A stretch of 64,000 nucleotides of DNA from Blastocystis sp. Blastoise (Eukaryota > Protista > Bigyra: Opalinata), in the NCBI GenBank assembly GCA_039096225.1, contig JBBPEB010000032.1, positions 372,001-436,000 on the forward strand. The letters are read 5' to 3'. The notes below the pieces were generated by a model. That model did no database searches and was not told the origin of the DNA. It was given only the letters and a program-made list of their open reading frames with translations. Shown piece by piece: positions 51,701 to 58,269 of the stretch. Position 1 is the stretch's first letter, and each line of letters starts with the position of its first letter. The position numbers and the translations under genes were made by a program.

Positions 51701-54700
51701 ATGAAGACACTATTTATCTTTTCAAAACGATTTATTATTTTTGTATTGATATTTTGGTAAGTTCATAAATTATTTTTATAGCTATTTTATATTCTTCTTT
51801 TAGTGCGAACATATGTAACGCCGTGTCAAATACAGATTCAAAAGTTCAATACTATAATCAATTAGAGAACGTATGTTTTATTGTTAATACGTTTGGTCTA
51901 TGTTTATTTTTATCTTAGAAAATGAGCAAAGCTCATAATTATGTAAAGAATAATCAATTTGGTAAAGCTCTTGATACTCTTAAATTTCTTGATTCTATTC
52001 CTGAAGAATATAACTATTTCGATGCTGTATATATATATATATTCTTATCATTTATTAATTTTTTTTTTCTTATTTAGACTAATGAAGAAAAACTACGTTG
52101 GTCATCTTATTTTGAATTTCGAGGAAATGTTTATCATAATATCCCACAATCTAGAAACGCTATTCAAGATATTAAAATCTCTTGTTCTATTTTAGATCTT
52201 ATTCAACCTCCACCTGTATATTTTTTTATTTATTAAGTTTGTGTTTTATAATTTTATTATAGTTTTTTTTTTTGATTCTATTTTTTTTATGTTTTTTAAT
52301 ATATATTTTTATTTTTTACATTTATTATACTTTAATAATATATATATATATTATTATATATTATTATAGATATCTAAGATCACTGAATGTCGTAATTTAT
52401 TATATGAAATGTATAACTTTGCAGGAGAAAGAAAAGAAGCTATTGAACTTCAAAAGAGTCTATTTAACCTACCAAATCTAAATACACTTGTATATATAAT
52501 CATATTTATTTGTTTATTTATTTATTTATTTGTTTATTTATTTATTTATTTATTTATTTATTTATTATTATTATGATTATGATTATTATACTTATAATTA
52601 TTAATTATATATATATAGAAATCAGACACTAATCCTGTCTTTGTTGAGGAGTATATATATTCTTTAGTTAGAATAACATTTATTATATATACATATATAA
52701 TTTGAGTGACCTTAATATTATATATATATACTTTTTTGCATCTATTATAGTATTTTTATTATAACGAATACATTTATATATAACTCTATATATAAATAAA
52801 ACTATATATATAAATGAAACTATATATATAACTATCTATCTCAATATATGTATAACTCTCTGTCTATATATATATATAACTATCTCTATATATAACTAAA
52901 CTATATATGTAATTCTCTCTATATATATATATATATATAACTCTATATATATATATATATAACTCTATATATATATATATATAACTCTATATATATATAT
53001 ATAACTATATATATAACTCTATATAAATAGGAAAATGACATCAGATGATGCTATATTATCAAGTTCTATGCACACTATTATAAGCTTATTAAATGAATTT
53101 GAAGAAGGCACGTTTATTACTCCTGAACAGTTCTCTAGTATATTAGAGAGTGTAGTTGATAATAATAATAATAATAATGATAATACATTAGAGAGAAGAT
53201 TCTGCAAGTATCTAATTAAAACTGTTAAAAAAGCATTAGAGTATATATATATTGTTATACTTTTACTTATAATACTTTTTATATATTTATATATATTTAT
53301 ATTTTTGTATCTTTTTTATCATATTATATTCTATTTTTTTACATTTTTTTTTGTTTATTTTATATAAAATAATAATAATTAATATAAATGTATATAATAA
53401 TAACAATAATAATAATAAATTAATATAATAATAATAATAAATATATATATAGTGATCCTCGTTATCTGGATACAGAGATACATCGTTTACAGGAAGTGAT
53501 TAAGTCTCCTCTTTCTCTTTCTCAACTACAAGAAATGTTCTTTCGTATCCGCTCTTTAAGACAGATTCAGCGAGCTTTTCAGCATTCCGAAGAATATAGA
53601 CAATATCTTGAAAGTAATACGTTTATATCCGATCAATTTATTGAACATCCACGATATTTCTTATGGGACTCAATACTATGTATAATTGTGGCTTTAGCTA
53701 TGTATATTATATATATATAATTAATATTATTATATAGATATCTTATGAATCATGTATTATATATTATTTGTTTTATAAATATTATATATATATAGATATT
53801 ATACAATTACTTTTTTAATGAATAAAATAATTTTTAAATCTCCAAAGAAAGTATATACTCCTCCTTCTCCTCCTCTTAGTCCAATTCATAATAATTCTAT
53901 AAATAAAAATAAATCAAAGGGGAAAAAGAAAGATGATAAAAAGAATAATAATAAGAATATTTCAAAATCATTTGGTTCACCTAAAAATATTAATGAAAAG
54001 AAAAAGAAAAATAATAAAAAAGAGTATATATATATTTTTTAAAAAGAAAATTTATAATCATTATAATATATATTTTACATATATAGACCTGTACCATCCG
54101 TTTCTTCTATTCGTGAACAAGATAATTCTGCGAAATCCTCCAATCAAAATGATTCAACTATAGAAATGATATCTAATGTATCCAATAAAGATATTGATAC
54201 TAGTACTTCTGCTATTAATAATAATGATATTACTATTAATAATAATAATGATATTACTATTAATAATAATGATATTACTACTACTGCTACTAATACTATA
54301 TCTGAACCTACTGTCACTAATAAACTTATATCTACTTCATCAACGGAAAAAGAAGATACTCAATGTACGGAGAACAATCCTGAAAAACTGATGGAACAAG
54401 AAATTAAATCAACAGTAACTAAAAAGAATGAAGTATATATATATATATATATAATATTCTTTATTTTCATATACATTTTATTATTTTTTTTTTATACATA
54501 GTCAAGTCGAACTGATTCTATATTATTAAATACTTTATTAAAATCATCATATTCTTCTCCCTCAAATAATAATAATAATAATAATAATAATAATAATAAT
54601 AATAATAATAATAATAATAATAATAATAATAATAATAATAATAATAATAATAATAATAATAATAATAATAATAGTACTAAATTATCTCCTAAACAAACTA

Positions 54701-57700
54701 CTACCACTAGTACTACTACTACCACTAGTACTACTAAAACAACTACTACTAATAATAATACTATAGATTCAAATGATGAATTATATTATTTATCCAAAGA
54801 CTGTGAGAGCTTCTCTCTGAGTAGTTCTGTTATGTCAATTCAAGATATTACTCAACAATTACATAACTCCCTTCATATTAATACCAATATAAATAATACT
54901 AAAGAAAATAATCAAGAGAATAAATATATTTCTGATAGTAATAATATACAAGACAAACGTAAATTATCTTCTTCTTCTTCTTCTTCTAATAGTAATAATA
55001 ATAATAATAATAATAATAATAATAATAATAATAATAATAATAATAATAATAATAATAATAATAATACTAATACTAATAATAATAATAATTCTCAACAAAA
55101 ATTCTCTGTAATTTCAAATGATAAGAATACTGCTACTTCCGTTTTACGTACATCGAAAGGAACTTCGAAGAATGGTACGGAGAAGGATACTATGTCTCGT
55201 AAACGATCTATTCCTAGTCCTAAACTCAATAACCGCGGGAATAGCGAATCTCCTAAAGAGGAATCATGTAATTCGAATAAAAAATCACGTAATAATTCTA
55301 TTACTAACAAACCAATTAATAAGAATTCTTATACTAATAATAATACAAATAATAATAATAGTAATAAAAATTCTATAAAAGTCACATCAATAGAACAAAA
55401 AACCAAGTTGAATTCAGTGTCTATGCTGAAATCAATTAAGCAAGATAATAATAATAAGAATTACTCAAAGAGTAGTATATCAAAAAAAGATATAAAAGAA
55501 AATAATAACAATGATAATAATAATAATAATAATAATAATAATAATAATAATAATAATAATAATAATAATAATAATAATAATAATAATAATAATAATAATG
55601 ATATTACTACTAATAATAATAATACAGCTATGAATGACAATAAATCTGTTCCAGTTACTCTGGTTTCCCCTTCATCTGTGTTCCAGTCCAGTCCAGTTTC
55701 CACTTCTCCTTTAACTCCTGTTGAACCTGGTACAACTACTCATGAATCAGATACTATAAATAGTATATATATATATATTTTTTTTTTATATTGTTCTTAT
55801 TATTATCTATATATATATATATATATAGAACCTGAAGATATCAATAAAGATATTATAACAAATTATTGCAATGTATATATATATATATTATATTTTATAC
55901 TCTATATGTAAATATATTTTATACTCTATATATAAATAATATTTTATACTCTATATATAAATGTATTTTATACTCTATATATAAATATATTTTATAGATA
56001 ACAATTCAAGCTACAATGTTACCTCCTGATAATTTCGATGGTTTATATTTAATGTTAAAAACTACTACTCCTCCTTCAAGTGATGTTAAATGTGAAAAGA
56101 TAGTAGTAGGTACTCATGTATTACATGCTTGGAAAATGACACAAATACGTGATCAATTATTATGGCATGTTACTTTATGTTTTAATCAATATAATTTTAG
56201 ATATCGTTATGCTACAAGATTAAGAAAGAGTAAATCACAATATAAATGGATTATGACTCATTGGATTAATAAACAATTACAATATGGTATAACAGAATGT
56301 ATATTACCCGTTGAACAACCTATCTTCCCTCATCTTTTAAGTACTTCTCAAGCTGGTCTGAATTCTTCTGATAATTTATCTTCATCTTATTTATCACTGA
56401 CTCAAAATTATCCATTATCTTCTTCGTATCTTTCTATATCTATGAATTCTAGTATGAATATAAATGATATTGATAAGAATGAAAATACTCAAAATAATAA
56501 TAATAATAATAATGATAATAATAATAATAATAATAATAATGATAATAATAATAGTAATGCTAATATCTCAGATAATAATGATAATGATAATAATAATGAT
56601 AATGATAATGATAATAATAATGCTAATGCTAATGCTAATAATAATAATAATAATAATAATAATAATAATACTAATAATATGATGAATACACCCGTACCTT
56701 TCTCTCTTCCTAATCTTTCTATTCCAAATATTCAAAGTCCTACTTTCATATCTCCTATGAATATGGCTTCTTATCCTTATGCTATTCCTCATTCTTCTAT
56801 GACCGAACAAAGTAATAATCAAGATAATAATAATAATAATATTAATAATAATGACAATGATGAAAATAATAATAATAATAATAATATCTCAGATAATAAT
56901 AATAATAATATCTCAGATAATAATAATAAAAATATCTCAGATAATAATAATAATAATAATAATACTATGCCTTATATGACTATGACTCCTATGTATATGG
57001 GTCCTCAAGAGAATATATTATTTAATGCTATTAATCAAACGATTGAGCCCAATGGAAATACTATTCCATCTACCATGAATACACCCAATGGATCGTCAAC
57101 ATCTCAGAACACAAACGATATCAATGGACAATCATCTATGGTGAATCCGTCCTCCGTACAAAATCCTATAGCATATACAAATCAACCTATAATTATTCCT
57201 AATTCTATTCCTTTTTATAATCAAATACCAACTAATTTTACTCCTCTTTCTCCTTCTCTTCTTACTCAACAAAATCAAGCTATGATCCCTCCAATGTATC
57301 CTCAAATAATCCCTATTCCTGTCCAATCATCTGCTGAGAATGTACGTGATACAAAGAATCAACCAACAGGAATCATATCTCCAACGATACAGTCGCCTGC
57401 TATGCATTCTATAGAAGCTTCTTCAACTTCTCAACTGAATCAACCATCTTTTCAAACTCTTCAATTACCAAATCAACCTATAAATAATACAATAGCTTCT
57501 CCATTAATAAATCAATATTCAAATACTTCTTTTATACCTACATATAATTATCCATCAATGATGCCTTTATATATGAATAATGGACCAATTATGTGTATTA
57601 CACCTACAGGAGAAATGGTATATTATGTACCTCAAGTGGTATCACCAGAAATGCTTCAACTAGCCGTACAACACCAAATAGAAGCCTATTTTAGTCCTAT

Positions 57701-58269
57701 GAACTTGAAAAATGATTCTTTCCTAATGGGTATATAGAATTGCTTTTTGCTTGCTATAGTTTTATTATTATTTATATTATTTATATTATTTTTTATATTA
57801 TTTTATTATATTATTTTTTATATTATTTTTTTATATTATTTTTTATATTATTTATGTTATTATTTATATTATTATTTATATTATTATTTATATTATTTTT
57901 TATATTATTTTTTTATATTATTTTTTATATTATTTATATTATTGTATATTCTTTATTATTATGAGTCTAGTACTATATATCATTTACTACTACTTATTCT
58001 CTAGAACGTATAAATGCTCTTAACGGTTGTATTACATTGAACACAATTCTTTCATTCGACTCCATTCGTTCTATTTCTACAGATCCAATTGTTGTCTATA
58101 AAGCGGCTGAAGCAACTAATTTATTTATTGTTGAAAAGAATGAAAAACATCTAGAAGAAACTAATGTATATATATAATATAATAATTATAATATATGTAA
58201 TATAATAATAATAATATAATAATAATATAATATATATAGTTTTATCTTCAACATTGGAATGAGGACTAA
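51701..58269 (+). CDS. ~1,600-aa type-I membrane protein: signal peptide, TPR-like ectodomain, TM, Asn-rich disordered region, small beta domain, C-terminal La motif
   Basis: 15 exons join by GT-AG introns with matching phases from ATG 51701 to TAA 58269. TM YFLWDSILCIIVALAIYYTITFLM followed by NKIIFKSPKK. La motif AVQHQIEAYFSPMNLKNDSFLMERINALNGCITLNTILSFDSIRSIS. Confidence 0.75.

Follow-up and report, generated by a model that had tools for sequence, protein, structure and literature searches.

The DNA considered here is a window of 64,000 nt from Blastocystis sp. Blastoise (assembly GCA_039096225.1, contig JBBPEB010000032.1, positions 372,001 to 436,000 of the forward strand), and all coordinates given below are those of the window. 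Its composition is 23.5% G+C; genome-wide searches covered the assembly of 33.34 Mb in 34 contigs. At 51701-58269 on the + strand lies a predicted gene of 15 exons. Its predicted product combines a signal-like N-terminus, a helical domain, one transmembrane (TM) helix, a long low-complexity tail and, at the extreme C-terminus, a La motif. Judged from the features of the locus, this architecture of a TM helix and a terminal La motif in one protein is probably real.

The gene model was rebuilt from the sequence and checked by script. The coding sequence comprises 4782 nt and is translated into 1593 aa with no internal stop codon, and all of the introns begin with GT and end with AG. Fifteen phase-consistent exons had been proposed from the letters alone (hereafter the sequence-only reading), and the rebuilt model reproduces them with the same start and end. 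The features of the gene are:

51701-51756, + strand: exon 1, the start codon and aa 1-19 of a signal-like segment that continues into exon 2.
51804-51870, 51919-52026, 52078-52215, 52370-52489, 52619-52650 and 53031-53240, + strand: exons 2-7, the first part of the predicted luminal or extracellular region, in frame and with canonical splice sites.
53453-53701, + strand: exon 8, the helical juxtamembrane part of the predicted luminal region and the first half of the TM helix.
53796-54023, + strand: exon 9, which completes the TM helix and continues into a basic stretch rich in Lys and Pro, presumed cytosolic.
54087-54432, 54502-55762 and 55829-55872, + strand: exons 10-12, an Asn/Ser/Thr/Lys-rich low-complexity tail.
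54565-54673 ((AAT)36), 54987-55089 and 55501-55624, + strand: (AAT)n arrays within exons 10-12.
55873-55997, + strand: intron 12, with a GTATATAT donor, a single AG and 9.6% GC, built of a 24-nt tandem repeat.
55998-57729, + strand: exon 13, an aromatic-rich island followed by a second tail segment (Asn/Pro-rich) and by the first half of the La motif (~57645-57728).
58005-58165, + strand: exon 14, the second half of the La motif.
58240-58269, + strand: exon 15, the final 9 codons and a TAA stop.

Splice signals at the locus are highly regular. All nine copies of GTATATAT and all six of ATATATAG found on the + strand of the span fall on donors and acceptors of the model, and the acceptor is the sole AG in 8 of the 14 introns. 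Because every one of these sites is used and the choice of acceptor is forced in eight introns, the fit of the reading frame was not tuned. Introns 9-12, which lead from the TM exon to the La exon, contain two, one, one and one AG. With donors set by the motif and exon frames set by long open frames, phase agreement over these four introns has a chance probability of ~1-2.5%.

The lengths of the same introns (63, 69, 66 and 125 nt, at 8-10% GC) are far below the median intergenic length of tortoise Blastocystis isolates, which is 645-719 bp (PMC12129017). In the genome of one such isolate (Rus-B), introns are longer than in human subtypes and stop codons are canonical (PMC12129017). Ultra-low GC was tried as a criterion to tell introns from intergenic DNA and was dropped; such segments occur throughout the window, including coding (AAT)n. 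A random frame in this genome closes after ~10 codons, compared with open frames of 469 codons in exon 11 and 579 in exon 13. Exon 11 (from 54502) has 110 open codons ahead of its first ATG and is therefore an internal exon, which cannot begin a gene. On the basis of splice sites and phase, we consider it quite likely that exons 1-15 form a single gene. Among the public sequencing runs that match the locus, one contains 52% of the sampled words (its type is guessed to be RNA) and a poly(A) gut metatranscriptome contains 10%.

Intron 12 is the weakest link joining the membrane half of the gene to the La half, and the exon that precedes it is a micro-exon of 44 nt. Tandem repeats also fill much of two other introns: the repeats lie at 52768-53026 in intron 6 (period ~20-24 nt), at 55878-55996 in intron 12 (24 nt) and at 57762-57960 in intron 13 (12-25 nt). 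Intron lengthening at this locus seems to result from local repeat expansion.

The spliced product was used for frame, hydropathy and composition; searches for families, homologs and structures were made exon by exon. Kyte-Doolittle hydropathy peaks at aa 1-30 and 310-340 only. In the first peak the 19-aa mean exceeds 1.5 for stretches starting at aa 1-12. A basic n-region (K2, K9, R10) is followed by a hydrophobic core and by small residues before a likely cleavage site and a polar stretch, an arrangement that fits a secretory signal. The second peak includes a predicted TM helix at aa ~313-336, interrupted by intron 8 in the gene. The 15 residues after the helix include four Lys and no Asp or Glu, and the residues before it include one Arg and two Asp or Glu. 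With Lys and Arg counted at four after versus one before, this positive-inside flank would place the C-terminal ~1250 residues in the cytosol. On hydropathy, then, the signal-like start and the single TM helix of the sequence-only reading are both recovered.

The ~280-aa region between the two hydrophobic segments has no Pfam family and no sequence relative in the PDB. Exons 7 and 8 are each single copy in the genome. A word-indexed search of protein collections with exon 8 gave no candidates, and two metagenome scans found no relative. A single-sequence AlphaFold2 (AF2) model of exon 8 contains five helices (predicted local distance difference test, pLDDT, 67), and Foldseek comparison of the model with the PDB returned chance-level rows only. 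The C-terminal domain of ERp29 (PF07749) was tried as a candidate for exon 8 and rejected, given an Atlas score of 0.86 (under the lead level of 0.9) and no Pfam or Foldseek match. This region had earlier been called TPR-like and the protein receptor-like. No TPR family was detected at E <= 10 in exons 3, 4, 5, 7 and 8, and no TPR chain was found in the PDB searches; the exons are short, and a weak repeat could escape such searches. With a TPR assignment unsupported by Pfam, PDB or Foldseek, the region can be called a helical orphan domain and no more. The receptor label is likewise unsupported, and so is the earlier idea that the protein connects a luminal signal with RNA control.

The predicted cytosolic tail (aa 337-1500, ~1160 aa) is rich in Asn, Ser and Thr, with 28-30% Asn and Asn runs of up to 36. 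Inside the tail is an aromatic-rich, non-repetitive island of ~105 aa (aa 954-1070, ~56016-56330). The island has no match among 1.84 billion protein representatives searched with phmmer, no paralogue in the genome and no Atlas lead, and its AF2 model (pLDDT 34) is unusable. The segment at 56884-56922 is part of an Asn-rich coding repeat; the later searches with exon 13 used 55998-56882 and 56925-57728 as queries. A word-indexed search with the part of exon 13 that precedes the La motif returned no candidates, and no PAM2-like motif was found in the tail. More than 1,000 aa of Asn/Ser-rich disorder had been expected here. The length and Asn content agree with that description; the tail is not purely disordered in that it contains the island.

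Intron 13 divides the La motif between the end of exon 13 and exon 14. In Pfam searches, positions 2-21 of the La profile PF05383 are covered by the last 20 residues of exon 13, at 17.5 bits, and positions 29-57 by exon 14, at 15.7 bits. When the genome was searched with the same profile, the end of exon 13 was found again (positions 2-22, 21.8 bits). The two matches follow each other in profile order, with 6 junction residues in place of the 7 profile positions between them. Two independent, collinear matches to PF05383 on either side of a phase-correct intron would be hard to get by chance. The terminal La motif of the sequence-only reading is present as two collinear halves that are each under the family cut-off, and its formal membership in PF05383 is tentative.

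The exon 13 half aligns to residues 13-36 of human La (E 0.29) and to residues 11-38 of the La motif of LARP1 (E 0.29). The best PDB matches of exon 14 are to the La motif of S. pombe SPAC1527.03 (Slr1; E 0.51) and to T. brucei La. The halves also align to LARP6, and both line up in order with six further La motifs encoded in this genome. In human La, the pocket that holds the RNA 3' end is formed by Q20, Y23, Y24, D33, F35 and F55. Equivalents of five of these six (Q20, Y24, D33, F35 and F55) are retained, with the F55 equivalent placed by alignment to the six paralogous motifs, T. brucei La and Slr1.

La-motif loci number at least seven in the genome. A second La-motif gene occurs in the window on the - strand: its motif is at 19901-20032, within 16840-20188, and scores 57.8 bits against PF05383, above the cut-off.

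The protein ends ~12 residues beyond the La motif. No RNA recognition motif (RRM) was matched in any exon, and 58166-61400 contains no RRM-like open frame, in agreement with the earlier expectation that none follows the La motif. DM15/LARP1_HEAT (PF21071) was detected neither in the exons nor genome-wide at E <= 1; the search was made exon by exon and control genomes were also silent, which makes this a weak absence. A La motif that lacks RRM, DM15 and PAM2-like motif points to the short-form LARP1 group (Slf1p, Sro9p, Slr1p) as the most similar kind known. This placement is tentative because the similarity is weak (E 0.3-0.5 per half) and because the match to LARP1 is level with that to human La.

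We propose, with a probability of roughly 0.55, that the product of the gene is a LARP1-like protein of the short form, tethered as a type I membrane protein, and that it keeps RNA 3' ends at a membrane. A cleavable signal-like N-terminus would direct insertion into the secretory pathway as a single-pass type I protein, and the ~280-aa helical orphan domain would face the lumen or the outside. The long, flexible Asn/Ser/Thr-rich tail of ~1100 residues would serve as a cytosolic leash with the lone La motif at its end. The La motif may capture oligo-U or poly(A) at the 3' ends of RNAs, and these RNAs, probably mRNAs, would be kept at the endomembrane or plasma membrane for local translation or storage. 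Tethering of mRNAs or Pol III transcripts, as suggested in the sequence-only reading, is likewise a hypothesis. Capture of RNA 3' ends is the likeliest mechanism because most of the pocket residues of human La are retained. The more specific proposal, a membrane-anchored LARP with a working La motif that captures mRNA or small-RNA 3' ends at the endomembrane on a ~1100-residue leash, is plausible at somewhat short of even odds.

Several points weigh against this reading, and they are best considered together with the alternatives on which they bear. The case for a single transcript is drawn from gene structure only, and the model could instead merge two adjacent genes. The upstream gene would then encode a small type I membrane protein (exons 1-9, perhaps with exons up to 11 or 12), and the downstream gene a soluble LARP1-like protein of the short form, its start codon being the ATG at 56016 or that at 54166 in exon 10. 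The first of these in-frame ATG codons is just six codons past the exon 13 acceptor, which would allow a soluble product to arise by initiation within the gene. Also, if exon 12 were skipped or introns 11-12 were retained, the upstream frame would stop within 55909-56030, near that same ATG. Known LARPs are all soluble, as is generally accepted. Asn-rich low complexity is widespread in the genome, and thus the similar composition of the two tails lends the one-gene model little weight. The authors of the genome paper caution that neighbouring genes can be fused in Blastocystis annotation (PMC12129017). However, the gap available between two such genes would be just ~105-125 nt, compared with the intergenic medians of 645-719 bp in tortoise isolates. 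Further, every gap opens with GTATATAT, closes at the only or the last AG and restores the frame, and the 110 open codons upstream of the first ATG of exon 11 do not suit the start of a gene. We therefore regard two merged genes as unlikely.

If the gene is single, the La motif may nevertheless be a winged helix that has degenerated or taken on another use, binding a protein partner or the ribosome or having no role, with the main function residing in the luminal domain. The equivalent of human La Y23 is Ala, and the two halves, each scored singly, fall well below the PF05383 cut-off (17.5 and 15.7 vs 37.1 bits). There is neither an RRM partner nor a PAM2-like motif in the tail, and contacts of LARP1-family La motifs with the ribosome and PABP have been reported (PMC12645190). 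Set against this are the five of six pocket positions retained and the collinear motif pattern. In PDB entries 7soo to 7sov the human LARP1 chains are 99 residues long; we take them to be the La motif alone bound to RNA. Slf1p and Slr1p also function through the La motif without DM15 (PMC12645190). Loss of RNA capture appears slightly less probable than merged genes. The remaining alternative concerns topology and address: the first hydrophobic segment may be an uncleaved anchor, or the protein may reside elsewhere, in the central vacuole membrane or, as with MDI-Larp, in that of the mitochondrion-related organelle. Signal peptide and TM helix were assigned by hydropathy alone, the N-terminal h-region is short, and the LARP1 family is repeatedly tied to mitochondrial mRNAs (PMC12645190). 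By contrast, the N-terminal sequence features described above suit a secretory signal, and we judge a different topology or address improbable, the least probable of the three alternatives. The tethering idea would survive it in any case because, with either topology, the positive-inside flank predicts a cytosolic tail. A more general point against the proposed reading is that no relative of any part outside the La motif was found in protein collections or metagenomes, which leaves no second genome for comparison of the architecture.

Upstream of the gene is a divergent neighbour on the - strand (48551-50138) with an open frame of 384 aa, and the two share ~1.5 kb of DNA up to the ATG at 51701. 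Downstream is a GC-richer island (58902-59211) with open frames on both strands. Rfam gave no family match anywhere in the window, this island included.

No description of a transmembrane LARP was found. The word transmembrane is absent from a survey that covered 135 species and 345 La/LARP proteins (PMC7928011) and from a 2025 review of LARP1 (PMC12645190), consistent with the earlier suggestion that a TM helix joined to a La motif is an undescribed architecture. A full-text search for LARP together with 'transmembrane domain' returned unrelated papers only, a result that is limited by literature coverage and is not proof. La-motif proteins are regarded as soluble. Where they act at membranes they are brought there by a partner, as in the MDI-Larp system, and it took an engineered Tom20-Larp fusion to demonstrate that anchoring suffices. 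If the proposed tethering is correct, a single chain that carries both anchor and La motif would offer a 'Rosetta stone' for RNA control at membranes, and a lone La motif could act as a membrane-tethered hook for RNA 3' ends. The domain architecture would be new to the La superfamily and would provide an entry point to mRNA localisation in Blastocystis; little is known of the cell biology of this gut protist, which is very common. The value of the finding is limited because the gene seems confined to one lineage, the luminal domain is an orphan and we infer the single transcript.

The protein shares with genuine La and with LARP4, LARP6 and LARP7 a La motif in which the 3'-end pocket residues Gln, Tyr, Asp, Phe and Phe are conserved. 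In those proteins the La motif is combined with RRM1, whereas the Blastocystis protein has no RRM. In layout it resembles the short-form LARP1 proteins (S. cerevisiae Slf1p and Sro9p, S. pombe Slr1p, Arabidopsis LARP1b/c), which have a late La motif, no DM15, no RRM recognisable by sequence and long low-complexity regions. These act on mRNAs and polysomes via the La motif (PMC12645190). They are soluble and cytoplasmic or shuttling, unlike the Blastocystis protein, in which the La motif forms the extreme C-terminus behind a signal-like start and a TM helix.

Single-pass mRNA receptors are known from the animal endoplasmic reticulum (ER), namely p180/RRBP1, AEG-1/MTDH, LRRC59 and kinectin (PMC8230838). 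Like the protein predicted here, these are single-pass and have long, flexible cytosolic regions, charged or repetitive, with which they retain mRNA or ribosomes at this membrane (PMC8230838). They differ in having no La motif or similar classical RNA-binding fold, most are without a sizeable luminal domain, and no sequence similarity to them was found. A functional parallel is Drosophila MDI, an AKAP-type anchor which recruits Larp to the mitochondrial outer membrane, and whose loss is rescued by a Tom20-Larp fusion (PMC12645190). That system involves two proteins and is mitochondrial; the Blastocystis anchor is in the same chain and appears secretory, and no sequence kinship to MDI was seen. 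In both cases a LARP1-family protein would be held on a membrane surface and promote local translation, and the Blastocystis protein would be a natural one-chain version of this arrangement.

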